From the IMG/VR virus record IMGVR_UViG_3300031951_000003, positions 186,001 to 250,000 of that record: a stretch of 64,000 nt of DNA; one strand, written 5' to 3'. Below the pieces are notes generated by a model that was given only the letters and a program-made list of their open reading frames with translations, had not been told where the DNA came from and did not search any database. The translations under genes and the position numbers were made by a program. This document shows positions 1-55,785 of this stretch, piece by piece (positions within the stretch are counted from its first letter, which is position 1; the number at the start of each line of letters is the position of its first letter).

Positions 1-845
1 TTTCCCATATCACTTGGCTGCCAAGCTCTTATTTTTCCACCTTCCAAAACACCAAAGAAAGGACCATTGGTTGCTCTTTCTCCTTTTGATGTTAATCCCG
101 TTGCCCCATAAAAGAAAGCTTCTCCTGTGTGTGATGAACCAGGATAATAAATTCCAACAACATCTCCCAAATCTAAGTCGCTAAAAGAAGACTGAGATGG
201 AACAGCTTGTGAAATTAAGGACTTAATTCTACCGAATTGACCTGATGAATTAATTTGATTTTCACTTAAGCCTTTCGAATTTTGGTTGATTTGTGAAAAA
301 ATGTCAGCCATTTCATTGAGATTACCTCCTTTGAATATTTTACTAAACCCATCTCCTTTGTTTGGAAATGAATTAGACAATCTGTATGCATGCCACGCAT
401 TACCCTGTCTTACACCCGTCTGACTTGCAACATATTGAGAGCATCCTATTGGACCTTTTTTTGCAACATTTTCCTTTCCTTTACAAACATCGTTCAAAGT
501 ATCTTTAACGGTGGGGTATAATACATATCTACCACAACGTTTGGTCAACCCACTATCACTAGGAACAGTTCCTTCTTGATTTCCCTCAAAATATGGTATT
601 CCTAATTTTTTTGACGTATAAGGACCTAATACCCCCTTACCGTTACCTCCATTTTTTAATTGGAAATCCTTTATTGCAATTTTTGTCAATTTTCCTATAA
701 TCCCATCAACTCCATCCCTATTTGGACCAGATTTCCCTAAGTTGTATCCTAATTCCTTAAGTTTTGTTTGAGCGGCTTTAACGAAATCAGTGTAAGATTC
801 GTATTGTTCGAGAATGACTCTCATTTTATTTCTTAAATTTTTCAT
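1..845 (-). CDS. Peptidoglycan-binding domain protein with putative Cys-amidase/CHAP-like region (3'-truncated at window edge; not in ORF track)
   Basis: Manual translation from ATG 845: MKNLRNKMRVILEQ...VKAAQTKLKELGYNLGKSGPNRDGVDGIIGKLTKIAIKDFQ (PG_binding_1-like), later GCSQYV...GNAWH; open to the window edge; ATAAATA at 852-858. Confidence 0.7.
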   Translation of the reverse strand, partial: MKNLRNKMRVILEQYESYTDFVKAAQTKLKELGYNLGKSGPNRDGVDGIIGKLTKIAIKDFQLKNGGNGKGVLGPYTSKKLGIPYFEGNQEGTVPSDSGLTKRCGRYVLYPTVKDTLNDVCKGKENVAKKGPIGCSQYVASQTGVRQGNAWHAYRLSNSFPNKGDGFSKIFKGGNLNEMADIFSQINQNSKGLSENQINSSGQFGRIKSLISQAVPSQSSFSDLDLGDVVGIYYPGSSHTGEAFFYGATGLTSKGERATNGPFFGVLEGGKIRAWQPSDMG

Positions 846-890
846 ACTTTAATAAATATGTTTTTATTTCTATTCTACCATCAGTTTTAT

Positions 891-1835
891 TTAAAACTTC
901 AAACAACCAAAACTATTCATGTATCTTACTACTTTTTCCAAGTAACCAATACTTGTTTGTTGACCCGAACCTTTGTTTGGAAAATAATTGGCAATTGGTT
1001 TGTTTTGTAAAACCATAATTTTCAGTTCAGGTTTAGATTGTGGAAAGGGTTGATATAACGTTTTGTCACACGGTGCAGCATAATTCGGGTCTTTTGTTTC
1101 ACACCATCTAGTGATTAGACCTGGCATGTTGTGTGCAACTATTGCTAAATCCATTGCGTTGTTACCTGTCCCATCAATTCCCTTGATACCCTTAGTTCTA
1201 ACTGCAATCGGATTAACGGATGGACCTGTTCCATTACCTACTTTTAAGGCTCTTTTGTAATCATCATTGATTCTGTGTAATGTCCCTATTCCTTGTTTCA
1301 AAGAACTGAAAGAATCTGAATAGGAACCAACTTTTTTATCTAAACCATAATCATTCCAAGTTTTTTCGGTAAATTGTGCTGAACCCAAACTCATTTGTTT
1401 CTGAGGTTTACCTGAAATTTTATTCACCAAATTTAACCCACCCACAGCGGATTTTGGGAGAAATCCAAACCCTATCGAATGTAAAAATTCTGCCGCGTCA
1501 TCACTCCATTCACTATAAGTACGGAATAAAGTTTCCCTTCCAATAATTCCGATTGCGGCTTTGGCCATGAAAAGCAGTGTATTAGCATCAACCCCAAGTT
1601 CACTCATCAATTTTTGTTTGTTTTGAACTACGTATTCTGCAAATGGTCTTACGTCCTCGGGAATACACGGGTATTTCTTCTCTAAACTGATATTTTCATT
1701 TTGTTTACTGACTCTTGCGTTTTCACGTGAATTATCTAGCCCAAATGAAGTTATTCCTGGTCCTGTTTGTTCTTTAAGAATTCGTAAGATAATATTCTCT
1801 AAATCCGTCTCAGTTAATTTGATACTTTTTTTCAT
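891..1835 (-). CDS. Leader-B protein (MKKSIKLTETDL...LKEQ), possibly lysozyme-like fold
   Basis: Start reassigned to ATG 1835 below TATTTAT (1842-1848); payload unassigned. Confidence 0.6.
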   Translation of the reverse strand: MKKSIKLTETDLENIILRILKEQTGPGITSFGLDNSRENARVSKQNENISLEKKYPCIPEDVRPFAEYVVQNKQKLMSELGVDANTLLFMAKAAIGIIGRETLFRTYSEWSDDAAEFLHSIGFGFLPKSAVGGLNLVNKISGKPQKQMSLGSAQFTEKTWNDYGLDKKVGSYSDSFSSLKQGIGTLHRINDDYKRALKVGNGTGPSVNPIAVRTKGIKGIDGTGNNAMDLAIVAHNMPGLITRWCETKDPNYAAPCDKTLYQPFPQSKPELKIMVLQNKPIANYFPNKGSGQQTSIGYLEKVVRYMNSFGCLKF

Positions 1836-1967
1836 TATGAAATAAATATCCACCAAAAATGACTTTTAGTGATGAGGGAAATAATTATTATTCTTTCAGA
1901 ATAATAATAAGAATTAATAAAAATAAAAAAAAAAGAAAAAAAACTAGTAATACTAGTTCTAGGGATT

Positions 1968-2249
1968 TTAGCAAACCGCCACACAAGAATCGAAACCTAA
2001 AATATCCTCTATAATTTTTGTTACTTCATTACAAGGGTCGTCCAAGAAACCAATGTGAGAGTCGGGTTCATCTCTCCGATTGTCTTTGATGGTTAGAAAA
2101 ACAGCATGAGAATCGGGAATCCATTTATTTGATTTGTCATCATATTTTTGGGTGGGGACGATTTGTATTTCTTTGATTAAAATATCCCCTCCGAAGGAGG
2201 TGTTCAACGAAGACTCAACAAGTCGTTTTATTTTTCCAATCTTGTCCAT
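1968..2249 (-). CDS. Hypothetical protein
   Basis: ORF track, co-oriented and overlapping the upstream gene. Confidence 0.55.
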   Translation of the reverse strand: MDKIGKIKRLVESSLNTSFGGDILIKEIQIVPTQKYDDKSNKWIPDSHAVFLTIKDNRRDEPDSHIGFLDDPCNEVTKIIEDILGFDSCVAVC

Positions 2250-2614
2250 GTCATGTCAGAATTTAAAACCACAGAATAAAGATGTTTTTTATTCCATTCG
2301 TTTGGACCAATAAGTGACAAAGTCTTGGACCCATCAGGATTCTCATATAAGTGATATATCTCCCCAATAATCGGTTCAAATCTATAGTTTGACTCGTAGA
2401 CCTCTTGTTGGATAATCATCGAATTTTGGAGGTCCTGTGCTTCTTTAATGAGCTCTTCATATCGTCTCTTAACCACTCGGTCGACCTTATTGAGACCGTG
2501 TTTTTTAAAGGATGTTAAGTCTTGGGGTTCAATCTTTGGGGCACCTACATGGGTTGGGTAGGGAATTACCATTGGTTGTAGATTAACCTTATCGATATGA
2601 GATTGAGTTGACAT
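2228..2614 (-). CDS. DUF2452-like protein
   Basis: YPTHVGAPKIEP...FEPIIGEIYHLY...LSLIGPNEW resembles the Bacteroidota DUF2452 family (recalled, not searched). Confidence 0.6.
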   Translation of the reverse strand: MSTQSHIDKVNLQPMVIPYPTHVGAPKIEPQDLTSFKKHGLNKVDRVVKRRYEELIKEAQDLQNSMIIQQEVYESNYRFEPIIGEIYHLYENPDGSKTLSLIGPNEWNKKHLYSVVLNSDMTWTRLEK

Positions 2615-2668: not shown

Positions 2669-3166
2669 TTACTGACCTTTAATCATTCCGATTCCGTGTT
2701 TTAAAAATTCTTTCGCTCTTGGTGAGAGATGTTGCATTGCATATACTTTTTCAATATCCTTAACTAATTCTTCACCGTGTTCGTTCTCCTTGTAGAGTTC
2801 TATGATTTTGTCCATGGCCTTACAACACTCTTTCTTTGTTTCATCAAAATAATTGTAGGGTTTGAATCCTTTAAGATGAGTCATTATTTGGTGTGCTAAA
2901 TGTTCTCCACCATCCGTAACCTTCGGATGAAGTCTCAAGGTTTTGAGCAATTCTAACTTATCAACTAATCCCCTAACACCGTTCTTTCTTAATCTTACTC
3001 CCTCAATATAATCATCATCTTCATCATCGCCCATAATTTCTTCTAACGATTTAGTGTTACCAGCGTGACAAAACTTTCTATCATCTTTTTTCTCGTCTTC
3101 AGAAATATTATAAAATTTCCTGATTTCTTCTTTTTCAGATTCGGTTAAATAAAATCTTTTACTCAT
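2669..3166 (-). CDS. Leader-E protein (MSKRFYLTESEKEEIRKFY)
   Basis: Leader motif; ATAAATA at 3171-3177. Confidence 0.6.
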   Translation of the reverse strand: MSKRFYLTESEKEEIRKFYNISEDEKKDDRKFCHAGNTKSLEEIMGDDEDDDYIEGVRLRKNGVRGLVDKLELLKTLRLHPKVTDGGEHLAHQIMTHLKGFKPYNYFDETKKECCKAMDKIIELYKENEHGEELVKDIEKVYAMQHLSPRAKEFLKHGIGMIKGQ

Positions 3167-4369: not shown

Positions 4370-4657
4370 TTAACTACTGGTTTTTGTTTCATCGTATACC
4401 TGGTTGACCTTATCCAATATTTTGAAAAAATTGTTTTTTGTTGAAGACTTGGTCTTTTTTCCACCTTTGAACAAGGAATTGAGTTCTTTGAGTTTATCTA
4501 TTGAATCCTCAATTGAATCTTCAACACTCGAGTTACCGTTGTCAGTATTGTAATTTACTGGTTGAACATATATGTCTAAATCCATAGCAGCACTGTTGGA
4601 ACCAGTCTCAAATAAACGGTTGTATTGTTCTTTGGTGATGAGTATTTTTTTCATCAA
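4370..4657 (-). CDS. Leader-A-like protein (MKKILITKEQYNRLFE)
   Basis: Leader motif. Confidence 0.6.
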   Translation of the reverse strand: MMKKILITKEQYNRLFETGSNSAAMDLDIYVQPVNYNTDNGNSSVEDSIEDSIDKLKELNSLFKGGKKTKSSTKNNFFKILDKVNQVYDETKTSS

Positions 4658-5298: not shown

Positions 5299-6369
5299 AT
5301 GCAAAGAACAGAAATAAAGAAGGTTTTAAGGGAAGCACTCGGGGTTCCTCACAACATTGTTGAGGTGAGTAAAAATGCCTACCAAAGAATCTTGAATTGG
5401 GTTAAGAGATTAGATTCAAAAGATTTTGAATATGGTCAAGGTGTCTCAATGAATTTCAGAGTTGATTATCAAATTGCAGACTTCAGGTTTACAACACTAA
5501 AAGTGAAACTCGGGGTTGATGAGCACCCAAAAATCAAAACACCCGAAATAATGTCTATGGCAATCCGTAGTCAATCAAGAAAAACCGAGGATATGAGACT
5601 TGAACCAATCAAGAATAAAACCGTGGATTTAGTAATCGTGATGTTGGTTCCGACTGATTTCAATTACGAAGAATTACCAGTATATTTTGAAAAAAATAAA
5701 AACGAGATTATTGAAAATCTTTCACACGAGTTCAAACATGCCTACGACCACTTCAAAAAACTTTATGACAACCCCATTCAGAGGGCAGAATATCAATCAT
5801 CTATAAATTTAGGTTTCAATTTTGAACCCTTAGATATTTTTGTTCATGATATATATTTTTCCTCCGCAAATGAAAATTTGGTCAGACCTAGTGAAATATC
5901 TGCAGCAATACAAACAGGTCAAATTTCGCAGAAAGACTTCTTAGAGTTTTTGAGAAGTAATGATACCTACAAGAATTTGAAAAGAATTAAAGACTTTAAT
6001 ATTCAGGACTTTGAAAATAGAATACTGAAAGATGAGAAAGGTCTGAACAAATTACTAAGGAAAGTTGGTGAAAAACCCAAGTTGATGACACCTGAGGAAA
6101 AGTTAGAAAGTATATACAAACTTCTTTATTCTGTAATTTCCCAAAAGAAAATAATAAGTTTTGCAGAAATGATTAAGACTAATTTTTTAGAGGAACTTTT
6201 GGGTTTTCAAGATGAAAAAAAGAAAGTTTTTGATAAGTTTGTATCGAGAGTTTCGAGATTCGAAAATCCCAAAGACTTTGTAAAGTATTATGAGAAATTC
6301 TTCAATTATATTGGAGACAAAATGATTCGTAAAATATCCAAACTTTACGCCATCACTCAGAAAAAATAA
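5299..6369 (+). CDS. Leader-F protein with HEXXH zinc-metallopeptidase motif
   Basis: MQRTEIKKVLREAL leader; SHEFKHAYD; sense TATTTAT at about 5278-5284, start moved to 5299. Confidence 0.6.
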   Translation: MQRTEIKKVLREALGVPHNIVEVSKNAYQRILNWVKRLDSKDFEYGQGVSMNFRVDYQIADFRFTTLKVKLGVDEHPKIKTPEIMSMAIRSQSRKTEDMRLEPIKNKTVDLVIVMLVPTDFNYEELPVYFEKNKNEIIENLSHEFKHAYDHFKKLYDNPIQRAEYQSSINLGFNFEPLDIFVHDIYFSSANENLVRPSEISAAIQTGQISQKDFLEFLRSNDTYKNLKRIKDFNIQDFENRILKDEKGLNKLLRKVGEKPKLMTPEEKLESIYKLLYSVISQKKIISFAEMIKTNFLEELLGFQDEKKKVFDKFVSRVSRFENPKDFVKYYEKFFNYIGDKMIRKISKLYAITQKK

Positions 6370-6839: not shown

Positions 6840-7556
6840 TTAAGTCAAATCAGTTGAAATCTTTTTACTCAATGTTGCATAAATCGGGGATGCAATATTT
6901 TTTACTTGATTTGCAATCTGCCCAACTAACGCCTCATATTTACCACCTGTAGCGTATCTAAGACCCCTCTTGTTTACAAAATTTTTAATCAAATCAGCAC
7001 CTGAGGTTGTATCTGTCAAATAACTTCTTGCAATCAAATCAAAATATGCTTGAATTCCTGATTGAACTGTGTTATGAAAAATGTTTTTACCGCTATTAAC
7101 GTTCCCTACATTGAATGGATTTTTTGTTCGGATTGGTCTTGAGGATGGATTTTTATCGAACCCTCCTTCTGCCGCTAATTGAGAAAGTGCCAATTCCACG
7201 GGAACGTATCTTCCGTATTTGGTTTGAGCATTTTTTGCTCCGTCGGCTAACATTGAACCTGTTATTCCCAAAAGGTTGTGTTTCCTTGTTGAAATAAATT
7301 TATCTGCAATACTTTTATAAGTTTCATATTCTGCAGGATTATTTAAATTCATCACAGGGAATTCACCTGTAGGCACGTTCAAATTTGTTTTGGTGTCTAT
7401 ATTTGATGAAGGGGAAGATGACGTATCAGTTTGATTTGGTTTTGTTGTCGAGAGAAACGTATCTAAAATCCCTTTACTGTCTTTTGAACCTATCAATGAT
7501 TTAAGAATCAAGTCTGTAAGGTCTTGCTCCGATATTAAAAATTTCTTTTTTCCCAT
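6840..7556 (-). CDS. Leader-A protein with glucosaminidase/lysozyme-like (GH73-like) domain
   Basis: LALSQLAAEGGF...NPFNVGN...SGIQAYFDLI...YAT; leader KKFLISEQDL. Confidence 0.6.
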   Translation of the reverse strand: MGKKKFLISEQDLTDLILKSLIGSKDSKGILDTFLSTTKPNQTDTSSSPSSNIDTKTNLNVPTGEFPVMNLNNPAEYETYKSIADKFISTRKHNLLGITGSMLADGAKNAQTKYGRYVPVELALSQLAAEGGFDKNPSSRPIRTKNPFNVGNVNSGKNIFHNTVQSGIQAYFDLIARSYLTDTTSGADLIKNFVNKRGLRYATGGKYEALVGQIANQVKNIASPIYATLSKKISTDLT

Positions 7557-9490: not shown

Positions 9491-10486
9491 TTATTTTTTC
9501 AAATGATTAAATTCGTATTCTATAAGGGAAGATTGAGGTAACTCCTTATTATATGTATACCTTGGACCTATGAAAGACCTTAACTGACCATTCAATTTTG
9601 TTTTTACGACTTTCTCCACATCTTGAATTGTTACATCTCCCATTTCCCCTTTAAGATAATTTTTTGTGGTCTTCTGACCTTTTCCACCAACCAAATCCAA
9701 TACATCGTATATGTCAACAATTACTTTTAACTTATCGGATGAATCATCAATTGAATTGATTTTGAATTTTGCGATAAAAGGGGTATTTTGCATTTCTTCA
9801 TCCCACGCCCACGAATATTGTTTGGCTGAGGACATTCTTTTATTCTGAAATTCTGATTCCTTAGATTTGAGTGATTTTTTTTTGTTTCGAATAATATCAT
9901 CATGGGTCCCATCTCTTTGCAACGTTTTCATTTCTTCTTTTGTAAGTAAAAAAACTTTTCCATCCAAATTTTCATTCCATGCAACTGGATTCGAATTACT
10001 CATTTGTCTACCTGTTGAAGACGAATAATGTTCAGCAACCTCATACCATCTATCATTTTTGTAAATATAAATCGGATACCACCCATATGATTTTACAATA
10101 TAATAAGGAGTTCTGTTGTCATCGAAAGACCAAAAACCCTCAAGATTCGTACCTTTGAAGGGGAGTTGGGCTATGGTATATGAATTGGCTTTTGTGTTTG
10201 AAGTCCACTTTCCTTTCATTTTTCTTGGGTCAACAAAATTTTCTTTCGTAAGATTTTTATAATCGCCGTCTTTTCTGTAATTAAGAAGATAAAGTTCGAG
10301 GAGGTATAATTCATGTCCTTCCGGTAGACCCATGTATTGAGAAACATTTTTGATTACATCCAAAAGTTTAGCACGTGTCTTGTGTTTTTTCTTTTCCTCG
10401 TTGAGAAACTTAAATAATTTTATAACTTTTGGTTCGAGAACTTTATCAAATTGTTCAAAAAGTCTATTTGAAATTTTATACTTCAT
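9491..10486 (-). CDS. Leader-A-like protein (MKYKISNRLFEQ)
   Basis: Leader; ATAAATA at 10492-10498. Confidence 0.6.
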   Translation of the reverse strand: MKYKISNRLFEQFDKVLEPKVIKLFKFLNEEKKKHKTRAKLLDVIKNVSQYMGLPEGHELYLLELYLLNYRKDGDYKNLTKENFVDPRKMKGKWTSNTKANSYTIAQLPFKGTNLEGFWSFDDNRTPYYIVKSYGWYPIYIYKNDRWYEVAEHYSSSTGRQMSNSNPVAWNENLDGKVFLLTKEEMKTLQRDGTHDDIIRNKKKSLKSKESEFQNKRMSSAKQYSWAWDEEMQNTPFIAKFKINSIDDSSDKLKVIVDIYDVLDLVGGKGQKTTKNYLKGEMGDVTIQDVEKVVKTKLNGQLRSFIGPRYTYNKELPQSSLIEYEFNHLKK

Positions 10487-10550: not shown

Positions 10551-11003
10551 TTAATTCGGAAACTTACAGTTGAATGTTTCACCAACCTTAATTGCCAATT
10601 CTTTAGAATATAGCTTAGTTTTTTCGTAATCGAAGGAAGAATCTTTTTTTAAAATTCTATTACAATCGGTATAAACTTTGAAAGAACCCAAATCAAGTTC
10701 AATGAGTTTGTTTGTAGTTTGAACGGCACTTCTTACCGGATAATTACCTGCGAATTTTTTTTCATCTGTATCATAAAAAAATTTAATATTAACAGGTTCT
10801 AATTTAGGTTGTGACGGTGAGGATGTGGTGGATTGAGTTGCCGTAGTTGCAGATGAACCACCCAACTTTATTTGTTGACCATATTCATATCTTGGGCTAG
10901 TTGTGGATTGTGTTGTTGATTTGATTTGGTCACCATATGTTGTGGTTGTTCCTTGTTCGGAAATCAATTTTTTATATTGTGCCTCAGTAATTATGTATTT
11001 CAT
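10551..11003 (-). CDS. Leader-A protein with Thr/Ser-rich linker
   Basis: MKYIITEAQYKKLISEQ. Confidence 0.65.
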   Translation of the reverse strand: MKYIITEAQYKKLISEQGTTTTYGDQIKSTTQSTTSPRYEYGQQIKLGGSSATTATQSTTSSPSQPKLEPVNIKFFYDTDEKKFAGNYPVRSAVQTTNKLIELDLGSFKVYTDCNRILKKDSSFDYEKTKLYSKELAIKVGETFNCKFPN

Positions 11004-11007
11004 ATTT

Positions 11008-11874
11008 TTAGTATTCTACTCTAATTTTTTTATAACCTGAATCATTCAACAACTTGGTGACTTGTTGTTTGAAATCACTTTTACTGGCATTCCAAGGTGC
11101 TGTTGATTTGAACACAATTTTCAAACTACTCATAGTTTCTTTAGGTTCAAACTTCATCGAGTGAACATATTTACCGTAAGGAAGTGAACGAATTTTTGTT
11201 TTAATTTCTTTATTCAGAACGGTTTTGACCCAAGAATCCAAGTTTTTGTATTCTGTTCCCAATCTATCAATATCTAAATGACCATGGTTTGGATTTCCGA
11301 ATTCCACACCCAAAAAACTCTCGGCAAATTTTGTAAACTCTCTCTCGAGGTTGCTAGGATAAACACTTCGAGTCTCTTCACTTTTAACCATTTCAGGAAA
11401 ATCTAAGACCACTTTGAAGTTAACTTTATAAGGAGAATTTTCTATTAATTCGATGTTTGCCCATGGAGGTAGATTCAATTCATCAATGAAATACTTGATG
11501 GGTCTTTTGAATCTTTCGGTAAATTTTTCATATTTTCTTTTCGATGGTAATTTGTATAAACCCTTTTTTACGATTGATTGAACAATACGAGGTATACTCC
11601 ATCTACTTATTTCAAAATTGTCATTGGAAAACATGGGGTCATCACCAATTAGTTCTTGGATAAATTTCTTTCCATATTTTTCTAATAGATATGATATTGG
11701 TGCATCTTTTTCTGAGTCAGGAAGATTTGTGTTTACCCAATTTCTGAACATTATGAAAAGAGCATCATAATAATCTAAATCGTCCACATAATTGAAATCG
11801 ACGGTATTGTTTTCTTCCATAATTGAATGAATCAAAGATACAAGTTCTGACTCAGATAACCTTAACTTCTTCAT
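11008..11874 (-). CDS. Leader-B protein
   Basis: MKKLRLSESELVSLIHSIMEE; ATAAATA at 11880-11886. Confidence 0.6.
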   Translation of the reverse strand: MKKLRLSESELVSLIHSIMEENNTVDFNYVDDLDYYDALFIMFRNWVNTNLPDSEKDAPISYLLEKYGKKFIQELIGDDPMFSNDNFEISRWSIPRIVQSIVKKGLYKLPSKRKYEKFTERFKRPIKYFIDELNLPPWANIELIENSPYKVNFKVVLDFPEMVKSEETRSVYPSNLEREFTKFAESFLGVEFGNPNHGHLDIDRLGTEYKNLDSWVKTVLNKEIKTKIRSLPYGKYVHSMKFEPKETMSSLKIVFKSTAPWNASKSDFKQQVTKLLNDSGYKKIRVEY

Positions 11875-12590: not shown

Positions 12591-12923
12591 TTAAAAAGTA
12601 ACGCTTTCTGCATCTTGTTTAAATTCATCATTAAACCAATCGATAATGAATGTCATTCCCTCACTTCCGAAATAATCCTCCAACGTTATAAATAAATCTT
12701 GGTCCAATACCAATTCTTTTTTCCAAACATAATAACGGGCAAAAGTTTCAGGTTGACCATTGTGATATGATTTTTTGTCCTTGTTATAATATCTGATGTA
12801 TGTATCATCCCCATCACTATAGGTGGCAACCTTAGCATTTTCGTCACTAAAATTTGGTCTAACTAAATTAATCATAGTTTTAATTAGTCTTACCAATCTA
12901 TCTTTTGATATTGTATAATCCAT
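12591..12923 (-). CDS. Leader-A, W-F family protein
   Basis: MDYTISKDRL; C-terminal IIDWFNDEF. Confidence 0.6.
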   Translation of the reverse strand: MDYTISKDRLVRLIKTMINLVRPNFSDENAKVATYSDGDDTYIRYYNKDKKSYHNGQPETFARYYVWKKELVLDQDLFITLEDYFGSEGMTFIIDWFNDEFKQDAESVTF

Positions 12924-13297
12924 TAAAAATCAATTTTTTTTACAGGTAATTCGAATCTTTCTTTGAACCATATCTTGAATGGTGCTCTCCAAGTATCTCC
13001 GAAATATCCATCTAGTATCCTTTCATATTGGGTTTCAAGTGAAACTGTTGGACATATGTCACGTGCATTACTTCCTTGTGTGAAATACTCACAGAAATAA
13101 TATCTAAAACATATGTCATCACCCGCATCAAAATCACCTCGATAATATTCTATTAAAGTATCAGATTCAAATTCTTCACCCGTCTCATCATCATATTCAT
13201 ACGGATGATGCCAATTGATGTCCTCGAGTGGAAACAATTCATCTAAGTAATTGATGATTGTTTGTTTGAGTCTTGATTCAGAAATAGTGTATTTCAT
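12923..13297 (-). CDS. Leader-A, W-F family protein
   Basis: MKYTISESRL; C-terminal FKIWFKERF; ATAAATA at 13303-13309. Confidence 0.65.
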   Translation of the reverse strand: MKYTISESRLKQTIINYLDELFPLEDINWHHPYEYDDETGEEFESDTLIEYYRGDFDAGDDICFRYYFCEYFTQGSNARDICPTVSLETQYERILDGYFGDTWRAPFKIWFKERFELPVKKIDF

Positions 13298-13372: not shown

Positions 13373-13729
13373 TTAATTATATTGACCTCTTTCATCCCAC
13401 ATATTCAAACACTCATAACCTTGTTCCTCAAAATTGTTTTCAGTGTCTATTAAGTTCACATTCTTTAATTCATCAAATGAACATAAATCAATACCATCAA
13501 AATCAGCGAAATCACAATCCCTCAGGGATAAGTATGTCAAAGTGCTTGGTAAGTTTGTTAATATTTTTCTAACTTGTTTTGAACTTGCACCCACCATCAA
13601 AACAAGCCCATTTTTTTTATCGAACTGATAATGTGGCTCATCTAATCTATACTCATCTTGTTCTTTAATTACCTTTTTTACTAATCTTATCATGTCAGAT
13701 TCTGTTAATCTTACTATTTTCTTCGACAT
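13373..13729 (-). CDS. Leader-B protein with short LRR-like segment
   Basis: MSKKIVRLTESDMIRLVKKVIKEQ; LPSTLTYLSLRDC. Confidence 0.6.
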   Translation of the reverse strand: MSKKIVRLTESDMIRLVKKVIKEQDEYRLDEPHYQFDKKNGLVLMVGASSKQVRKILTNLPSTLTYLSLRDCDFADFDGIDLCSFDELKNVNLIDTENNFEEQGYECLNMWDERGQYN

Positions 13730-14491: not shown

Positions 14492-14842
14492 TTAATTGTA
14501 GTCCTCTTCTGGACAGGTCATACGATAAATTTCGAATAGATATTCACCAAACCAATCTTTAACAACATCAGTAACATAACTATAAACATCATCATAATCA
14601 TCCCCTAAGGAATCGACAAAATCTTCATCTTTGGTCAGGAAATCATCTATCGCTATTCTAATTACATTATCTGCATAATCGAACTCATCTCCGAAATCAT
14701 CACACAATGTTGGAAAATCTAATTCTGCATTACGAATGAAGGGTTCGATATTATCTTTAGATAATCGTCTCCTTAATCTTATTTGATAGTCTTCGATTAA
14801 AAAATTGTATTGGGTTTCGGATATGATAAATTTTTTGGACAT
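14492..14842 (-). CDS. Leader-A acidic protein
   Basis: MSKKFIISETQY; D/E-rich payload. Confidence 0.6.
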   Translation of the reverse strand: MSKKFIISETQYNFLIEDYQIRLRRRLSKDNIEPFIRNAELDFPTLCDDFGDEFDYADNVIRIAIDDFLTKDEDFVDSLGDDYDDVYSYVTDVVKDWFGEYLFEIYRMTCPEEDYN

Positions 14843-15731: not shown

Positions 15732-16196
15732 TTAATTACATGAATTCATAAAATCTTTAGCCTGTGAAATCAAAGATTTTACTTTGACAGAATAAGTGCC
15801 AGCCTTACATTGTGGTTTAGGACAATAAACTCTATCTAATAATTTATAATAATCTTCCTCACCACCTATACTTTCAATTTTTCTAAAATCCTGCCATAAC
15901 TTGTAATCTTCAACAGATTGTTTCCAATTGTCATATCTTGCGTGACCCCTATATTCACCAGTAGCCGTCTTCGGTCTAATTTTGGCGTATTTCATACCAA
16001 AACAATTATTATTGGCTTTGAATATTTCACTTTCGAAATGACCTGTTTCTAATATTGCTTGGGCAATTGCTATTTCAGGAAACCTGATTCCTGAATTCTT
16101 CACATAACATGCAAATTCTGATGGAGAAAAGTTCTCCACTTCTGAATCAACACCCATGATTTCTTTAATTCTTGTTATGTCCTCGTAAAGATTCAT
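15732..16196 (-). CDS. Leader-C protein with GH73/FlgJ-type glucosaminidase domain
   Basis: MNLYEDITRIKEIMG; IAIAQAILETGHF...NNCFGMK...YDNWKQSVEDY. Confidence 0.75.
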   Translation of the reverse strand: MNLYEDITRIKEIMGVDSEVENFSPSEFACYVKNSGIRFPEIAIAQAILETGHFESEIFKANNNCFGMKYAKIRPKTATGEYRGHARYDNWKQSVEDYKLWQDFRKIESIGGEEDYYKLLDRVYCPKPQCKAGTYSVKVKSLISQAKDFMNSCN

Positions 16197-16588: not shown

Positions 16589-16996
16589 TTAAAATCTTTT
16601 TTTTGTTCGAAGTTTTATTGGACCATCTTTTTGATATCTGTTCCAATAATCTCTTCCTGGTTTAGAAACATCCGAACCAATCCTGTCTTCTTGTCCGAAA
16701 CTCCATTTATTTCTCGGTACATCCCTTTGGGTAATGTTCTTATACATTTCAAAGTCATCTGGTCCAAACTCAATTTCTTCATCATAATCAAATTCTTCAG
16801 GGTCAACAGGTCTATCGTCTTCATCAAACCAACTGTCTCTGTGACCTAAAATACCCCTGTTTTCAGGTTTCATTTTCATGAAGTGTCTTTTAGGCATTTC
16901 AGTTCCCATATCCAACGAATCAAGTTCATGTTCTTTTAAAACTCTTTTAACCAATCTTATCAAATCAGATTCGGTCAATCTTACTATTTTTGACAT
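16589..16996 (-). CDS. Leader-B protein
   Basis: Start moved to 16996: MSKIVRLTESDLIRLVKRVLKE. Confidence 0.65.
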   Translation of the reverse strand: MSKIVRLTESDLIRLVKRVLKEHELDSLDMGTEMPKRHFMKMKPENRGILGHRDSWFDEDDRPVDPEEFDYDEEIEFGPDDFEMYKNITQRDVPRNKWSFGQEDRIGSDVSKPGRDYWNRYQKDGPIKLRTKKRF

Positions 16997-17078: not shown

Positions 17079-17474
17079 CTACTTCCAACTATCCAAATTT
17101 AATGTCCTAATTTGAGAAATTATTTGGTCATTTATTTTGTTGTAAGAATTGAAATGATAAATTGAGTTATCAATTAAATTCATGAGAGCTTGTTTTCTTG
17201 GTTGTGGCATGTTCAGACCAGATACCTTATTTTTAAGGGATGCCAACTCAGTCATAACTTTGACATTCGGCTCATCTAATTTTTTTAATTTCTTAATCAG
17301 TCTATCGAGTCTTGACAAGTTCTGAAAATAATCCATTCCATATCCTCTTTTAACACCCTTAACACCTCTATAAAAATCACCCAATGCGTCGAACGGACCT
17401 TCGTTTGTTTCTTGTTCTTGTAAAACTTTCTTTACAATTCTATTTAAATCTGATTCAGTTAGTTTTTTTGCCAT
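17079..17474 (-). CDS. Leader-B helical protein
   Basis: MAKKLTESDLNRIVKKVLQEQ. Confidence 0.65.
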   Translation of the reverse strand: MAKKLTESDLNRIVKKVLQEQETNEGPFDALGDFYRGVKGVKRGYGMDYFQNLSRLDRLIKKLKKLDEPNVKVMTELASLKNKVSGLNMPQPRKQALMNLIDNSIYHFNSYNKINDQIISQIRTLNLDSWK

Positions 17475-37769: not shown

Positions 37770-39107
37770 TTATAACATACCATCAATACTCGAACCAATA
37801 GATTGATAAATAGGATGATTCGAATGTGGCTCAATTTTACCTATCGGTGGTTCAATCAAGGTTGCCCCCTGTTGTTTAAATTGTTTATAGTAATTTCTCA
37901 CTTCTTTTTCTGTTATGTTTTTCAATCCACCCCATCCCCAAGAACCTTGAACGACGTAAAAGTTAGCGTTTGGAAACTTTGATTTCAGAACGCTAAACAA
38001 TCTGGGTATATCATCCTTGGTAAATTTACCAAATCCCCCATTAGTCCCAATTACTATAATTACATTGGAAACGTCATTACTCTTGGGATATTGTGAAACT
38101 GCGTCTGTCAACCATGAAACAGTTTTTCCACCTTCCCAAAGACCATCAATTCCACCTGATTTGGTCAACCTCGACGCTTTAGTTGTATTCATATCAACAT
38201 ATGGGACTTGTGAATCCCCAATAATGATATTTTTACCTTGAGAAATAGTATTCTTACCTTTAGTTATCGTCTTTTTGTTATTGGCTAAGTCTATGGCTTG
38301 TTCTAAATCCTTCACACCGAATTTTTGTGCTTGTGGTAAAAACCCTGTCATGACAAAAAGTTTTGGATTAGACATTAGCATTCGGTTCCAACCATTGTAG
38401 TTAGTTGTATAATCCCATATTTTTTTAGTGTCACCCCAACCGTTTTGGTAAAGGTAACCTCCAACATTTCCACCTGTTCTATCGGCACCGTGAGCACAGT
38501 GTATGAGAACATTACCTTGGCTAAGTAATGAATTAACTTTATCTTGGTCTTTAGTAGATGAAAGTTTAAAGAATTTAACCCCTTTTGATTCTGCTAAATT
38601 CTTTTCTGATTGTATTGTTGTCATCGGGTGTGTCGAGTAATGTCTTGAATCACGACCGTCTCCGTTGAATCTGATGATAGTTTTTATTCGGTATTTGTCG
38701 ATAAGCTCTGACAAATAATCTTTACCATTAAGTGTTACAGGTATCTGTGCAGAACGGTAATTATTTTTCCCATCAGGAATCAAGTGAAAATTGAACTCTT
38801 TACTGAGTGTCTCATCTTTTACATCACCAATATATTTCTGCGCAATTTGTTCTCTTCGATTGTTGAAAACCTCTGGTTTCATTCCAGCTTTAAATGCCTC
38901 GTGTGCCGCCTTTGTGAATGGACCATACTTCCCGTCAACACCATCCTTGTTCGGACCAAACTTTCCAATGTAATATTTCTTTGATGTTAAGAAATTTTGT
39001 AAATCCTTAATTTTAGGGTCAACGTCATAGGATATTTCGAAACTTTCGTCTTCGACCGCTTCCCCCATGAGAACTCTGATTCTTCGTATGTTTTCTTGCA
39101 GATTCAT
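37770..39107 (-). CDS. Leader-C multidomain protein: PG-binding + tyrosine/dual-specificity phosphatase + SGNH-like hydrolase
   Basis: Start moved to 39107 MNLQENIRRIRVLMG; DLQNFL...DGVDGKYGPFT; NYRSAQ; LIHCAHGADRTG; IIGDSQ...IGTNG...HP. Confidence 0.7.
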   Translation of the reverse strand: MNLQENIRRIRVLMGEAVEDESFEISYDVDPKIKDLQNFLTSKKYYIGKFGPNKDGVDGKYGPFTKAAHEAFKAGMKPEVFNNRREQIAQKYIGDVKDETLSKEFNFHLIPDGKNNYRSAQIPVTLNGKDYLSELIDKYRIKTIIRFNGDGRDSRHYSTHPMTTIQSEKNLAESKGVKFFKLSSTKDQDKVNSLLSQGNVLIHCAHGADRTGGNVGGYLYQNGWGDTKKIWDYTTNYNGWNRMLMSNPKLFVMTGFLPQAQKFGVKDLEQAIDLANNKKTITKGKNTISQGKNIIIGDSQVPYVDMNTTKASRLTKSGGIDGLWEGGKTVSWLTDAVSQYPKSNDVSNVIIVIGTNGGFGKFTKDDIPRLFSVLKSKFPNANFYVVQGSWGWGGLKNITEKEVRNYYKQFKQQGATLIEPPIGKIEPHSNHPIYQSIGSSIDGML

Positions 39108-49954: not shown

Positions 49955-50626
49955 TTACGGTTTTATGTATACCTTGGTGCCTGAAGGAATTGAGTTCAAC
50001 ATCCATTGAATTGCATTGTTTGAAACTCTAATACAACCGTTGGAACGAGGAGTTCCTAAGTTTTTCTCTTTGTTTGTTCCGTGGAAATATATGTTCCTTG
50101 AAAATGCGTTTTTGTTACATGGCTCTAACCCATCGAGTTCCAAAATACCTGTGAGAACCTCAGCCACGTGTCTTTGTCCCTTCTCATCCACTCTCATCGA
50201 GTCTTTGTCAGGACCCAAAATTTTACCTGTTGGAGTTTTAGCCACAATCACCTCATATGGTTTTGCCTCAACTTTTCCTTTTACTTGTAACAAACCTGTT
50301 GGTGTTTCCTTATTATCAGGACGATTGTTAAAACCATTCGCACCAGTTGATACAATAACAGTTTTGATTGCGGTTTTACCGTCTTGTGTGTAATACATTC
50401 TTTGTTCAGGTCCCCAAACTATCAGAAGTTTTTCTCCCTGTTTTATCATTCCCTTTTCAACCAATTCAGAATAAAGTTCTTTCCAATCTTCAGCTTCAAT
50501 TATTTCAGGACTACAATCGGTAACCTTTGGTTTCTCTTCTTCATCATCAAACCAAGTGCTCGGTTTATACCAAGCCTTTTGTTCTTGTAACTTCGCCAAC
50601 TGTGATTTGGTTATGATATACTTCAT
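49955..50626 (-). CDS. Leader-A protein with L,D-transpeptidase (YkuD) domain
   Basis: MKYIITKSQL; VSTG...TPTG; IYFHGT...GTPRSNGCIRV. Confidence 0.85.
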   Translation of the reverse strand: MKYIITKSQLAKLQEQKAWYKPSTWFDDEEEKPKVTDCSPEIIEAEDWKELYSELVEKGMIKQGEKLLIVWGPEQRMYYTQDGKTAIKTVIVSTGANGFNNRPDNKETPTGLLQVKGKVEAKPYEVIVAKTPTGKILGPDKDSMRVDEKGQRHVAEVLTGILELDGLEPCNKNAFSRNIYFHGTNKEKNLGTPRSNGCIRVSNNAIQWMLNSIPSGTKVYIKP

Positions 50627-50647
50627 AAAAATAAATACCTTTATTAA

Positions 50648-51454: not shown

Positions 51455-51775
51455 TTAAACTTTTCTTCTGTGTGGTTTACCATGATGTCTTTGACATTTG
51501 GAACACACAGGTTGTGGTTTATGTTGAGCCATTCTAATTCTTTGAGCCGCTCTCATTTGTTGCATTCTTTTGAATTGTTCTTCAGACATTGTTATAATGA
51601 CTTTACCGTCTTTCTTTTCAATCTGAGGTCTTTCCATTTCCCATCTTTGTCGATGGTCTATAAAGTCTCTAAATTGATTAGGAAGAGGTCTTTGGCCTTG
51701 TGGTCTCATAGGCGGTTGAGCTGCTAGTGTAAGTGTGGCAAATACACCGAGCAGAATTAATGTGATTTTTTTCAT
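51455..51775 (-). CDS. Secreted low-complexity protein
   Basis: Signal peptide ending LAAQ; Q/R/P-rich. Confidence 0.55.
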   Translation of the reverse strand: MKKITLILLGVFATLTLAAQPPMRPQGQRPLPNQFRDFIDHRQRWEMERPQIEKKDGKVIITMSEEQFKRMQQMRAAQRIRMAQHKPQPVCSKCQRHHGKPHRRKV

Positions 51776-53337
51776 GTTATTGCTTTAAATTTTTCTGTAC
51801 TTAAATAAGTATTTTCCCAATAAGGTGGATTAATTTTTTTTGGACTTACTTTTTTCAAAAACTCACCATTGATATCATAAACGTTTACTTTGTCTGATGG
51901 CGTCCCTAATGAGAAATCAGCCTCGAAAATATACATGTTTCCATCTTTCGATTTGACCACGTCAGTCCAAAGACCACTTCGGTAACCCCCTCGAAAACTA
52001 CCTTGGGAGCGAATAGCTCCATTTGGAAAATAATAAGTCCATTTACCTAAGTAAGACTTAGTAGCTCCGATTTTACCCATGGCTTCAACTTTTCCTGTTC
52101 TTCCGAAAAAAATAGTTTTACCATATGGGTAAGAATCCCGTTCGTCTCTCATGTTGGAAACATATCTAATTTTACCTGTACCAGTATAGCCCGTTTGAGT
52201 CATATCTGAATAATTCATATTCTTATAAACTCCGTCCCAATCACCCATCATCCATATACCTATTCGTTTTCCGTTATTATTATATGTGCCTTTTCTGTAA
52301 ATTTTTCCGTTTTTGAAATTCTCTTCATATTCACCTACTAAACCTCCACTTAAAGTGGTTCCCTTTTTCTCAATTTTTCCGTCGGAATAGTATTGAACAA
52401 AAGGCCCTTCTTCTTCACCATTTTTATAAGTCTTAATTCCCGCAAGTTGTCCTCCACCGTAAAAGTATTTCCACACACCCTGCTTTCTACCATTGTCGTC
52501 TTCGAAACCTTTATCTTTAACGGGGATTTCAAATTGGCTTGGAAAATTTTCAGCTTCGATACTATATTTTGGAACCCTATCACCAACAAATTTGAAAAAA
52601 TCTATTTGTTTTATCTTATGCGTTTCATAGTCATTTTTGTCCATAAACTGACCTGACTCATGATGTAATTGATAAGGAGACCTCCTATCATCCAAATTAA
52701 AAAGTAAAAAATAACTTGAACCCTTTGGGTCAGTCAGATAATTTTTGAAGTAACTATATTGACCTATGGTACATATATCAATTTTAGCACCTTTGTCTCT
52801 TCCTTTGCATCTTCCTAGAATGTCTCTATATAACTTCCAAACATCTTTGTTTACACCAAAAACTTCGAATACCTGATACTTGTAGTCGCCATTGTCATAT
52901 ATCCCCAAGTATTTTATTCCACCTGAGGATTCCAACTTCTCGATATCATTTTGTGAAACAAAGTTATCTTTACCCTGTATTTCATCATAGACAATATTTC
53001 CTTCTCTAAGTTTAACAATCTCTTGCAAAAATTTCTTAACATCTTCGGCGGTCCTATACAGGTGAATGTCCTTGTATTCAAACTTTTTCTTATTTTTCTC
53101 GTATAGGTCGAAGTATTCTTTATACTTGTATACATCCTCGGCTTTGATAATACCAGTTCCCACCTTCTTTGTGAGCCAACTCAATAAATAAAATTTGTTA
53201 CCCGTAACTTCAACTATTTTATTGAAGTCATCTTCTGAAATGGGCTTTCCCTCACCTACATATTTGTTTTTGAGATTGAGAACATTTTGGTCAACTTGTT
53301 CTTTTAATACTTTCCAAATGAGGGAGCGTAGTTCCAT
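51772..53337 (-). CDS. Leader-F protein with C-terminal MORN-variant repeats
   Basis: MELRSLIWKVLKEQ; repeated G.W.YY/F..G....G.Y..G. Confidence 0.7.
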   Translation of the reverse strand: MELRSLIWKVLKEQVDQNVLNLKNKYVGEGKPISEDDFNKIVEVTGNKFYLLSWLTKKVGTGIIKAEDVYKYKEYFDLYEKNKKKFEYKDIHLYRTAEDVKKFLQEIVKLREGNIVYDEIQGKDNFVSQNDIEKLESSGGIKYLGIYDNGDYKYQVFEVFGVNKDVWKLYRDILGRCKGRDKGAKIDICTIGQYSYFKNYLTDPKGSSYFLLFNLDDRRSPYQLHHESGQFMDKNDYETHKIKQIDFFKFVGDRVPKYSIEAENFPSQFEIPVKDKGFEDDNGRKQGVWKYFYGGGQLAGIKTYKNGEEEGPFVQYYSDGKIEKKGTTLSGGLVGEYEENFKNGKIYRKGTYNNNGKRIGIWMMGDWDGVYKNMNYSDMTQTGYTGTGKIRYVSNMRDERDSYPYGKTIFFGRTGKVEAMGKIGATKSYLGKWTYYFPNGAIRSQGSFRGGYRSGLWTDVVKSKDGNMYIFEADFSLGTPSDKVNVYDINGEFLKKVSPKKINPPYWENTYLSTEKFKAIT

Positions 53338-54090: not shown

Positions 54091-54408
54091 TTACATGAAC
54101 CTTTTGACCCTGTAACCCATGTTACCCAAGTAATCCTTGAAAACCTCTTTTGTTCCTGTTTTGGATAGGTTAAACATGATTTTTACGAGTTCGAAAAGTT
54201 GGTCAGTAACGAATAAAATTTGGTCACCTTTCTCATATGCCATCTTGTTTTCCTTACCTTTTCCGAACAAGACTAGGTTGTTAGTTTCCTCAGGAGAATA
54301 GTCCTCAAGGTAACTGTCAAGAAATAAAAAAATCTTGTCATTTATTTTAGATTCTCCAACAATTCCAAGGAACTTGTTTAATCTATTTTCTGTGATGATG
54401 TATTTCAT
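54091..54408 (-). CDS. Leader-A paralogue
   Basis: MKYIITENRLNKFL. Confidence 0.65.
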   Translation of the reverse strand: MKYIITENRLNKFLGIVGESKINDKIFLFLDSYLEDYSPEETNNLVLFGKGKENKMAYEKGDQILFVTDQLFELVKIMFNLSKTGTKEVFKDYLGNMGYRVKRFM

Positions 54409-54713
54409 GGCTCTACGAATTCCACCTTAACATTGAATTTATTTTCGAACCATAGTTTAATTAAGAGTTTCATTTTTTCTTCACTCAAAGCAAACATATC
54501 GGTCATATTTTTTTGGAAGTGGCGGTTAACCCATAATCTTCCATCTGTGTGGTCAAATTCCATAATGTCCTCCCAATCGTCTTCACCATCCCCAATTTGG
54601 TGAGATACTACAATATAAGGATGAAGTCGGTTAACAACCTTCCTTTCAATCAAATTGTTAAGGTAGTCGATAATAAACTGATTCAACCTATTTTCAGAAA
54701 TAATGTATTTCAT
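54405..54713 (-). CDS. Leader-A, W-F family protein
   Basis: Start moved to 54713 MKYIISENRL; LIKLWFENKF. Confidence 0.65.
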   Translation of the reverse strand: MKYIISENRLNQFIIDYLNNLIERKVVNRLHPYIVVSHQIGDGEDDWEDIMEFDHTDGRLWVNRHFQKNMTDMFALSEEKMKLLIKLWFENKFNVKVEFVEP

Positions 54714-54714
54714 A

Positions 54715-55068
54715 TTACTCGTCTTCATTTTGGTCTTCTTCATGCATCCACTCAAAATTATCCATTGTGAGGGATTTATCATATCTCTCATTGAACCAAT
54801 TTATTATGGTTTTGATGGCGTCGAGATTAGGAATTGAAAAAAGTTTAGTTAATTGAGTAACTAATCCATCACTAAGGTAAATCACTTCAAACTCTCTGTG
54901 TGGATGCATACTTGAATATTGAATTCTGTAAAGAATTTTGCTTGTATTATACTGTCCGTCTGCAAGATTAAACTCACCATCACCAATATCCCACTCCCAC
55001 CAATCGATTGAATCAAGATAAGATAATATCAAATTTTTTAACCTATTTTCTGTTATTACGTACTTCAT
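54715..55068 (-). CDS. Leader-A, W-F family protein
   Basis: MKYVITENRL; IINWFNERY. Confidence 0.65.
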   Translation of the reverse strand: MKYVITENRLKNLILSYLDSIDWWEWDIGDGEFNLADGQYNTSKILYRIQYSSMHPHREFEVIYLSDGLVTQLTKLFSIPNLDAIKTIINWFNERYDKSLTMDNFEWMHEEDQNEDE

Positions 55069-55357
55069 GGTTAATATTTCTTATTGTTGCGGTGGCTGAA
55101 TGAACGGGAACTCCAACCATATCCTCAACGAACTGTGCAAGTTGGTGTTTAAAAAAATGAAAATCAGGACCCATAGTTCTTTCGGTAACATAAAATATTG
55201 GATGAAGAATATAATAGGTTCCACCCATCATTGCTTTACCTTCTTCAATCGCAACCTCAGTTTTCATAACAGAGTTGTTTGTGAAAGTCTCAGCAACCTG
55301 TTTGATAATTTCTTTTATCCTATCGTTTTGTTGTTCTGTAATAATATATCTTTTCAT
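55043..55357 (-). CDS. Leader-A protein
   Basis: MKRYIITEQQ. Confidence 0.6.
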   Translation of the reverse strand: MKRYIITEQQNDRIKEIIKQVAETFTNNSVMKTEVAIEEGKAMMGGTYYILHPIFYVTERTMGPDFHFFKHQLAQFVEDMVGVPVHSATATIRNINHEVRNNRK

Positions 55358-55785
55358 CATACTTTTGTCCAGGTCATTTCAAAAACCTCATATTCGAGTG
55401 GTGTTCCATAATAGGCAATATCCAAATTGAAATAAGATTTGAGGTCCTTATATACTTCCCTCTTGGCAAGTAAAGACCAATTCCTATCCTTCTTTTGTTT
55501 GCTGAAGTCAAAGTAAAATTTGATGTTTGGTCTTTGAATGGAGAAACCTTCATTTCCATAATGAGTTCCTTTCTCCCCAATCTCAATCTTCACCAACTCA
55601 TCCCCAAACTTAACTTTAAAAAATTCTATAATCTTTGGAAGTATACGTTCGATACGAACTTTGTAGTCCTTAATAAATTGAATTCTCTCCTCTTTTGAAA
55701 GTTCATGAAACTTCTCCACCCAATCAGGTGTGTCTGATGTCAAAACAATTGCCTCCCTTAATATTTTTTTGATGAGTTCTCTCAT
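55357..55785 (-). CDS. Leader-F protein
   Basis: MRELIKKILREA; ATAAATA at about 55790. Confidence 0.6.
   Translation of the reverse strand: MRELIKKILREAIVLTSDTPDWVEKFHELSKEERIQFIKDYKVRIERILPKIIEFFKVKFGDELVKIEIGEKGTHYGNEGFSIQRPNIKFYFDFSKQKKDRNWSLLAKREVYKDLKSYFNLDIAYYGTPLEYEVFEMTWTKV

Follow-up and report, generated by a model that had tools for sequence, protein, structure and literature searches.

Recurring N-terminal leaders on unrelated proteins of an uncultured T4-like jumbo phage: a possible expanded capsid-targeting system

Our analysis of a 64,000-nucleotide stretch of DNA (positions 186,001 to 250,000 of the IMG/VR record IMGVR_UViG_3300031951_000003, called the window below) revealed that 40 genes within its positions 1-55785 begin with a recurring leader of 9-25 residues, 38 of them on the minus strand, as established by a curated reading of the N-termini of all open reading frames. 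These leaders are under selection as peptides, they are swappable modules autonomous from the payload that follows them, and in the data searched they are confined to viral sequence. Altogether, we favour the view, with a probability of about 0.55, that they represent an expanded, multi-family version of the capsid-targeting sequence (CTS) system of phage T4, in which the peptide would be cut after the leader Glu. The source contig (IMG/VR 3300031951_000003, 321,139 bp) belongs to an uncultured T4-like jumbo phage, of which ~192 of 321 kb were read (the window plus ~130 kb beyond), and the same phage recurs as contigs of 313,585-321,283 bp across several lake metagenomes. Locus L066 of the source contig (194,775-204,269) matches positions 8775-18269 of the window with 100% identity.

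Leader families and their conservation as peptides

An initial annotation, made from the letters of the window, had reported about 40 reading frames with recurring leaders in six families, and our reading confirmed 40 such genes: 16 with leader A or an A-like leader, 10 with B or B-like, 6 with C (for which seven had been claimed), 2 with D, 2 with E and 4 with F (Table 1). Leader A (MKYIITE.Q; 11 strong and 5 weaker members) is conserved across MKYIITESQ and shows an amphipathic pattern thereafter, leader B follows M[SK]KI[IV][RK]LTESDL.RLVK[RK]VIKEQ (8 strong and 2 weaker members), leader C follows MNL.ENI.R[IV]KE[LIV]MG, often with a hydrophobic-hydrophobic-x-E next, and leader D follows MNRS.SKIRHIQE.N..LEKRLLKE. 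All six families are thus present, but they are interrelated through shared cores. Indeed, B, F and D have in common a C-terminal core (hydrophobic-hydrophobic-[KR]-[KR]-hydrophobic-hydrophobic-[KR]-E-[QE]), A, B and E have in common a strand plus a T/S-E-x-[DEQ] helix start, and leader F looks like the second half of leader B. With strict hidden Markov model (HMM) and regular-expression criteria, on which the counts beyond the window hinge, the window yields 30 leader genes and the remaining ~130 kb read from this genome only 3; therefore, the leader genes form a local array. Note that an E-type leader was also confirmed outside the window.

The similarity had been described as stopping right after an E or EQ, and the B leaders do end sharply at this point. 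Among 181 unique B leaders, collected with a search pattern that fixed positions 0-10 and left the flanking positions free, the terminal Glu is present in 94% (3.9 bits), the residue after it still holds 1.6 bits (Q in 47%), and every later position falls below 1 bit; the ~12 residues downstream are enriched in acidic residues and are variable. The richness in [I/L]-x-E motifs was also borne out, since the first 28 residues of a leader protein contain on average 2.08 copies of [ILVM]-x-E, versus 0.54 for other N-termini (p 1e-13), a test that is partly circular because the families were defined as containing the motif.

Within the leaders, pairwise amino-acid identity ranges from 0.63 to 0.84 and third-codon-position identity from 0.52 to 0.64, and identical residues use the same codon in just 48-65% of cases, which is approximately the codon-usage expectation. 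Synonymous sites are thus randomised, and therefore what is conserved is the peptide and not the DNA, which rules out a DNA-level repeat or a translation signal. A related proposal, that the conservation acts on RNA to support translation start on near-leaderless mRNAs, could point to a TATTTAT box lying only 4-6 or ~15 nt upstream of the ATG, which leaves very short 5′ untranslated regions. However, third codon positions and codon choice at the random expectation largely refute it, the conservation extends up to 25 codons, and we regard it as hardly credible.

The payload list of the initial annotation was confirmed for GH73 (E 8e-14), YkuD (1e-20) and C39 (1e-18), to which PG_binding_1 can be added, and transmembrane (TM) hairpins and acidic proteins are present as well; in contrast, the phosphatase corresponds to a weak DSPc match with a CX5R motif, the ParB-like protein and the ATPase to weak PHROG matches, and the HEXXH protein to the motif alone. 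Most payloads carry no recognisable function, so that the term effector would apply to them only putatively. The GH73, YkuD and PG_binding_1 payloads, which act on peptidoglycan, are without export signals, and this fits a delivery from the virion. The same enzymes could also suggest that the leaders export proteins to the periplasm or cell wall at lysis by a non-Sec route, such as a holin or a phage-specific translocon. Nevertheless, the leaders have no hydrophobic core (hydropathy over 10 residues reaches a maximum of 1.53, versus >2.6 in the six true signal or TM N-termini of the window), the phage employs ordinary Bacteroidota-type signal peptides where export is wanted, and the majority of payloads are not cell-wall enzymes, all of which makes such export highly unlikely. 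In line with this, none of the leaders has the hydrophobic core (at least ~10 residues behind a basic N-region) that marks Sec, Tat or lipoprotein signal peptides, and none ends in the GG of double-glycine leaders. The C39-like protein (37085-37759) is itself tagged and is without the ABC transporter part.

Leader exchange and distribution in public data

Homologous payloads bear different leaders in related phages, and it is on this basis that the leaders are considered swappable, as had been proposed when they were called portable onto unrelated domains. Orthologues of the 29492-30007 protein on other contigs have a B, D or E-type leader, and one of them, 83% identical overall, is nevertheless E-type-led, with the switch located exactly at EQ|APMA. 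Homologues of the YkuD payload carry at least five kinds of leader (A, B, E, F and others) and never a Sec signal, and the MORN-type payload of 51772-53337 has a homologue with leader C in loci L107/L110/L114. Overall, swaps of the A/B, B/D, C/F and leader/none types were observed on homologous payloads, and the 252 unique leader proteins of the fetched loci fall into 180 payload clusters, of which 149 are singletons.

AlphaFold2 (AF2) models of two proteins agree with the claim that the leaders lie outside the payload fold. In the 29492-30007 protein, the leader helix (residues 9-22) is predicted with a local confidence score (pLDDT) of ~54, the linker with <50 and the domain with ~80, and in the YkuD protein (49955-50626) the corresponding values are ~51 for helix 7-19, <50 for linker 20-34 and >90 for the domain. 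In both models, the leaders would thus be low-confidence helices on flexible linkers. No fold match in the PDB was obtained for the 29492-30007 payload. Cases of an apparently C-terminal leader B were explained by a conserved head-module protein with a similar end helix, by fusions or by genes cut at contig ends.

At a larger scale, a profile built from 50 B leaders matched 9,888 representatives of 50%-identity clusters among 1.84 billion at E <= 0.001 (a count that takes in gene fragments), including 852 at E <= 1e-10, and nearly all of the 9,888 align from residue 1. A degenerate DNA pattern of the leader-B core was found in at least 120 IMG/VR stretches, with a Met six residues upstream of LTESDL in nearly all of them; among the 120 loci listed, 3 are the phage of the window and 5 more are 76-84% identical to it over short stretches. 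Some foreign contigs carry leaders A, C and D together. Using the DNA pattern, we obtained no true leader-B match in 185,579 bacterial and archaeal genomes (GTDB), where the only 10 matches are all unrelated internal sites in high-GC genes, and a cellular or prophage origin was therefore rejected. Megablast with the window DNA and tblastn with the leader proteins tried gave no GenBank phage match.

These distributions bear on the view that the leaders have no targeting function and are remnants of paralogous families, or a recombination scar travelling with a promoter cassette. Some payload families are indeed paralogous, and the tandem genes in 20721-24470 have near-identical promoter regions. 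On the other hand, the leader peptide has been maintained although its synonymous sites are randomised, one 23-residue peptide stands on ~10^4 unrelated clusters in phages whose compared stretches show no detectable similarity at the DNA level, and the payloads diverge completely directly after the leader. Such an absence of function thus appears very improbable.

Head module, TATTTAT box and the proposed route into the capsid

The initial annotation had counted on a prohead protease and had named its absence as grounds for abandoning the proposal, and the same genome does encode a gp21-family Peptidase_S77. The head module was located by walking ~80 kb from the window, synteny with relatives having failed to locate it, and lies on the contig of the window at 103,260-124,564, ~78 kb away. 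It contains Terminase_6N, Portal_T4 (E 3.5e-76), Gp23 (E 4e-71), Peptidase_S77 (L353:16432-17145; E 1e-21, scoring 77.8 bits where the cut-off is 27) and a scaffold-like protein of 525 aa (L353:17806-19380), and the protease aligns to the solved T4 gp21 (PDB 5JBL, E 3.7e-13). The association recurs elsewhere, since 16 of the 120 leader-B loci listed hold a Gp23-family protein of 600-640 aa adjoined by a scaffold-like protein and a Peptidase_S77 gene. In addition, a head-module gene family recognised by YMFFSNLEQ (113 orthologues) nearly always has a B-type or F-type leader. The capsid family is very large, with at least 570 IMG/VR loci and, at 90% identity, at least 8,000 clusters, and the contigs bearing it reach 464 kb; its sequences place it in the T4 superfamily, the capsid protein being 41% identical to that of Flavobacterium phage immuto and the protease ~39% identical to a cyanophage gp21.

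A second link between the leader genes and the head module is provided by the TATTTAT box, which has 53 minus-strand and 10 plus-strand copies in the window. It stands upstream of 31 of 39 leader genes and of 12 of 83 others (Fisher p 3e-12), at 4-6 or ~15 nt from the ATG, and often follows a hairpin and T-run terminator. The same box is found upstream of the portal, S77 protease and scaffold-like genes of this genome, of its tail-fibre genes and PA5oct-like structural gene, of head genes in two related ~295-kb contigs and, in the cultured phage immuto, of terminase, portal, sheath, tube, hub and tail-spike genes. From these sequence associations we infer a late promoter, or promoter-like element, and the leader genes are probably late genes because both in this phage and in immuto the same box stands before head and tail genes. 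Note that five consecutive leader genes in 20721-24470 (A, A, C, C, C) have near-identical 35-nt upstream regions (CCATCT.A.ACAA.TGGGTCGTGATATTTATTG), which suggests a recent cassette duplication or an operator beside the box. A phage-encoded sigma-70-like protein (Sigma70_r2 + r4; L339:2948-3745), ~40 kb past the end of the window, is a candidate factor for the TATTTAT promoters. Immuto itself (NC_055915.1) has two small leader-like families between its tail-spike and terminase genes, MKKSQL..IIKE.. (102294, 102880, 113188 and 123355) and MEN.FDLKKFLVENKLT.. (103806, 117631 and 118632). This small version of the pattern behind the same box could be a laboratory model for the tag hypothesis.

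In T4, internal proteins bear N-terminal targeting propeptides of 10-19 residues on otherwise unrelated cargo, these are removed by gp21, and gp21-type proteases cleave after Glu (PMC9026906, PMC3012670, PMC5694885). The end of leader B has a gp21-type motif that is position-specific, with the Glu in 94% and hydrophobic residues at P3/P4. By analogy, we infer core binding, packaging, cleavage and ejection for the tagged proteins. A tagged protein would be made late, alongside the head proteins, and its basic amphipathic N-terminal strand-plus-helix would bind the assembling prohead core, where the acidic scaffold-like protein would be its likeliest partner. The cargo would be enclosed once the Gp23 shell closes, the gp21-family S77 protease would cut after the terminal Glu (hydrophobic-hydrophobic-x-E, usually then Q) and free it inside the head, and the freed cargo could exit with the DNA at the next infection. 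Since the tag is short, autonomous and has a fixed end junction, recombination could move it onto any gene, which would explain a very large and fast-changing cargo repertoire. Reviewers have already suggested that targeting sequences let T4-like phages package varied proteins (PMC9026906, PMC3012670, PMC5694885).

Several observations weigh against this capsid-targeting interpretation. Leader B, with 23 aa, is longer and far more sequence-constrained than a T4 targeting sequence, the Gln kept after the Glu in 47% of B leaders suggests constraints beyond the P1 Glu, and the existence of several leader families remains unexplained if the destination is single. The cargo amounts to ~7,900 residues in total, including TM proteins and enzymes of 445-521 aa. 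Some fusion proteins contain tandem or internal motif copies, in certain cases two or three, resembling fused neighbouring tagged genes. The late assignment of the box comes from gene association. Moreover, the phage has a ClpP and a Clp-type AAA+ protein of its own, both potential readers of N-terminal tags. Finally, the first 30 residues of the major capsid protein (MCP) are invariant among six aligned capsid proteins that are ~76-78% identical overall (L353:19419-19500), and its N-terminus, LKHLKVIKED, resembles the end of leader B without statistical significance; this similarity was dropped as evidence, given that an HMM of the 10-residue core fails to match the MCP.

In another view, the leaders would be docking or co-assembly helices for each other or for a partner other than the prohead core (e.g., in the tail or baseplate, in membrane-associated assembly or in an oligomerising coiled coil) and would never be removed by proteolysis. 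An amphipathic strand-plus-helix on a linker would suit this role, tandem, internal and apparently C-terminal copies do occur, several families could mean several partners, and a conserved ~230-aa protein of the head module has a B/F-like helix at its own end. Nevertheless, the conservation boundary coincides exactly with a near-invariant Glu, which is a better fit to a cleavage site, the motif is ~150-fold enriched at N-termini, and a T4-type protease and core are present in the genome, so that we consider docking unlikely.

Clp unfoldases read N-terminal motifs, and the leaders could accordingly be tags for the phage's own ClpP and Clp-type AAA+ protein, leading to timed degradation or unfolding of co-regulated late proteins. 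The same phage encodes a CLP_protease (L342:12546-13223) and a 671-aa double-AAA Clp-type protein (L349:7944-9959), and the same AAA+ family recurs beside leader-B genes on other contigs (9-member cluster; phrog_4871, E 1.6e-232). However, 40 single-gene transcription units with strong promoters seem wasteful for doomed proteins, and both the terminal Glu and the link to the head genes would be left without explanation, which renders such a degradation tag quite improbable. An HSP20 gene lies near the ClpP and Clp-ATPase genes, giving a phage-borne protein quality-control or degradation set.

A more ambitious form of the capsid-targeting interpretation is that the leader families constitute an addressing code, specifying partners, copy number or the order of loading and ejection, and that the tags mark ~10^4 families of virion-delivered proteins; we put this forward as a tentative and rather doubtful extension. 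If true, the cargo of this globally abundant clade of freshwater jumbo phages would consist of anti-defence, cell-wall and host-takeover factors, and the delivered families could be read directly from metagenomes through their first 20 residues. Likewise, if the capsid-targeting interpretation itself holds, the internal-protein principle of T4 would here be taken far, with dozens of cargo genes per genome, thousands of families across public data and a combinatorial protein library built by recombination at a fixed junction. The leaders would then provide a sequence handle for phage-delivered proteins that are hard to predict, a class including anti-restriction proteins such as T4 IPI*, and natural portable packaging tags for putting foreign proteins into large capsids.

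Genomic setting and comparison with known systems

The window has a GC content of ~33% and is devoid of tRNA genes, and most of its genes lie on the minus strand; the features discussed above are collected in Table 1.

Table 1. Leader genes and two example TATTTAT boxes in the window (positions within the window; yes, box present upstream)
Coordinates (strand)	Feature	Length (aa)	Payload or remark	TATTTAT box
1..845 (-)	leader F (MKNLRNKMRVILEQ)	349 in full	PG_binding_1; cut at window edge	yes
891..1835 (-)	leader B	314		yes
2669..3166 (-)	leader E (MSKRFYLTESEKEEIRKFY)	165		yes
4370..4654 (-)	A-like leader (MKKILITKEQYNRL)	94		
5299..6369 (+)	leader F (MQRTEIKKVLREA)	356		yes
6840..7556 (-)	A/B-like leader (MGKKKFLISEQDL)	238		yes
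9491..10486 (-)	A-like leader (MKYKISNRL)	331		yes
10551..11003 (-)	leader A (MKYIITEAQ)	150	HMM A	
11008..11874 (-)	B-like leader (MKKLRLSESELVSLIHSIMEE)	288		yes
12591..12923 (-)	A-like leader (MDYTISKDRL)	110		
12923..13297 (-)	leader A (MKYTISESR)	124		5 nt upstream of ATG
13373..13729 (-)	leader B	118		yes
14492..14842 (-)	A-like leader (MSKKFIISETQYNFL)	116		yes
15732..16196 (-)	leader C	154	GH73 glucosaminidase, Pfam E 7.7e-14	yes
16589..16996 (-)	leader B	135		yes
17079..17474 (-)	leader B, short form MAKKLTESDL	131		yes
19652..20677 (-)	leader C	341	HEIQH motif	yes
20721..21713 (-)	leader A (MKYLITESQ)	330	no Pfam/PHROG match	yes
21754..22368 (-)	leader A	204	two predicted TM segments	yes
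22406..22948 (-)	leader C	180		yes
22986..23546 (-)	leader C	186	weak ParB-like match, PHROG E 1.9e-4	yes
23574..24470 (-)	leader C	298	P-loop GTSSAGKS	yes
26657..27307 (-)	leader A	216	one TM segment	yes
27385..27858 (-)	E-like leader (..ISEEEKNAIREQ)	157	TM region	yes
27943..28449 (-)	leader D	168	TM region	yes
28551..28850 (-)	leader B	99	payload 32% acidic	yes
28941..29381 (-)	leader B	146		yes
29492..30007 (-)	leader B	171	beta-rich payload	yes
30023..30029 (-)	TATTTAT box		15 nt upstream of 29492-30007 ATG	
30111..30407 (-)	leader D	98		yes
30815..31198 (-)	leader B	127		yes
35864..36247 (+)	leader A (MRYIITQTQ)	127		
37085..37759 (-)	B-like leader (MKIRLTEEKLVQIITEIVEQ)	224	C39-like cysteine peptidase, Pfam Peptidase_C39_2 E 1.2e-18	
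37770..39107 (-)	leader C	445	CX5R (CAHGADRT), weak DSPc match	yes
49955..50626 (-)	leader A	223	YkuD L,D-transpeptidase, Pfam E 9.8e-21	yes
50631..50637 (-)	TATTTAT box		4 nt upstream of ATG (near-leaderless mRNA); hairpin and T-run terminator before it	
51772..53337 (-)	leader F (MELRSLIWKVLKEQ)	521	MORN repeats	yes
54091..54408 (-)	leader A	105	final gene of four-gene run	
54405..54713 (-)	leader A (MKYIISENR)	102		
54715..55068 (-)	leader A (MKYVITENR)	117		
55043..55360 (-)	leader A (MMKRYIITEQQ)	105		
55357..55785 (-)	leader F (MRELIKKILREA)	142	first gene of 55785-54091 run	yes

A Bacteroidota host is probable, given a type IX secretion system (T9SS) C-terminal sorting domain, a barrel of the SusC-like type, signal peptides with AQ/SQ at their ends and immuto as the closest cultured capsid relative. 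The sorting domain and the SusC-like TonB-dependent barrel (CarboxypepD_reg + OMP_b-brl_4) are found in genes of the same phage (L139:1-1498 and L348:4528-7803) and point to host-type outer-membrane proteins and a Bacteroidota host.

Three other features of this genome should be mentioned. A strand-switch region (31200-33700) contains G/C runs (31270-31400), ATATCGT repeats (33440-33600), the repeated words TGTGGAAAA[CG]TT and TGTGGATAA, and odd small reading frames only, and it adjoins two T5orf172-like genes at 33734-34192 (+) and 34284-35036 (-); no Rfam match was found in it and no RNA family anywhere in the window, and its possible identities include an origin, a further class of promoter and a mobile insert. 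Putative UmuC-like and UmuD/LexA-like genes (judged by N-terminal sequence), a UvrC-like GIY-YIG + RNase H gene and a T4 denV-like Pyr_excise gene (window 41585-42793, 43728-44045 and 59334-60599; L339:1336-1875) together look like a set for tolerating and repairing DNA damage, carried by a jumbo phage. Finally, four paralogues with the N-terminal motif NISE..F.W.P.(K/R)TGS.H (3201-3908, 8486-9118, 40384-41001 and 41004-41588) looked sulfotransferase-like by eye.

Among cellular systems, the encapsulation peptides of microcompartments and the cargo-loading peptides of encapsulins are short amphipathic terminal helices on flexible linkers, portable between proteins and able to load a protein shell, which in encapsulins has the HK97 fold of capsids. 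The leader helix and linker of the AF2 models resemble them; in contrast, the cellular peptides, which serve organelles, undergo no proteolytic removal, and no microcompartment or encapsulin shell family was found among the Pfam labels of the 192 kb read (of 321 kb). Type VI secretion system effectors (MIX, FIX, RIX etc.) place a conserved N-terminal marker on diverse effector domains, which can be used as a search handle (PMC11699363). However, those markers are larger domains of cellular secretion systems, whereas the present leaders were not found in 185,579 cellular genomes.

Some phage systems come closer. The MuF module, itself a head protein, folds as a domain of a few hundred residues and is no short peptide. 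In the MuF polymorphic toxins of temperate phages, this conserved N-terminal module is thought to be capsid-targeting and is followed by variable C-terminal effector domains (PMC11699363). The arrangement of a conserved N-terminal module on variable payloads is thus similar, and neither MuF nor any Pfam domain was detected in the leader region of the 30 leader proteins scanned. The giant phages phiKZ, 201phi2-1 and SPN3US also have heads holding many packaged proteins with inner-body or ejection propeptides. In these phages a gp21-related protease cuts after Glu and paralogues have conserved N-termini, and SPN3US, as an example, has ~50 head proteins, a subset of which is processed (PMC5694885). 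Nevertheless, the propeptides of these phages mostly exceed 100 residues and end in (S/A/G)-x-E, whereas the leaders described here are short (15-25 residues) and have hydrophobic residues before the Glu, and these short leaders together with a T4-type head module (Gp23/Gp20/S77) separate the present phage from the phiKZ-like type.

The principle itself is already known from T4. In the literature searched, no published description of these leader motifs was found, and what appears undescribed is how many genes per genome are tagged, that several leader families are interchangeable, that 23 residues stay nearly invariant over ~10^4 cargo clusters and that they are restricted to one abundant uncultured clade. 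T-even relatives are said to bear varied proteins with CTS-like sequences (PMC9026906, PMC3012670). As in the T4 CTS system (IPI, IPII, IPIII and Alt, removed by gp21), a short N-terminal peptide stands on unrelated, fast-evolving cargo and ends in hydrophobic-x-Glu, the homologous head module (gp20, gp21/S77 and gp23) is present, and expression would, judging by the shared box, go with that of the head genes. A sequence relation to the T4 CTS, including a resemblance of leader A to the IPIII targeting sequence, would be no more than a lead, and the function here is a putative one. In contrast to the handful of tagged genes in T4, ~40 are gathered here in a 56-kb array and ~10^4 cargo clusters follow a single leader, at least six leader families are interchangeable, and the leaders are longer (up to 23-25 aa) and much more conserved.

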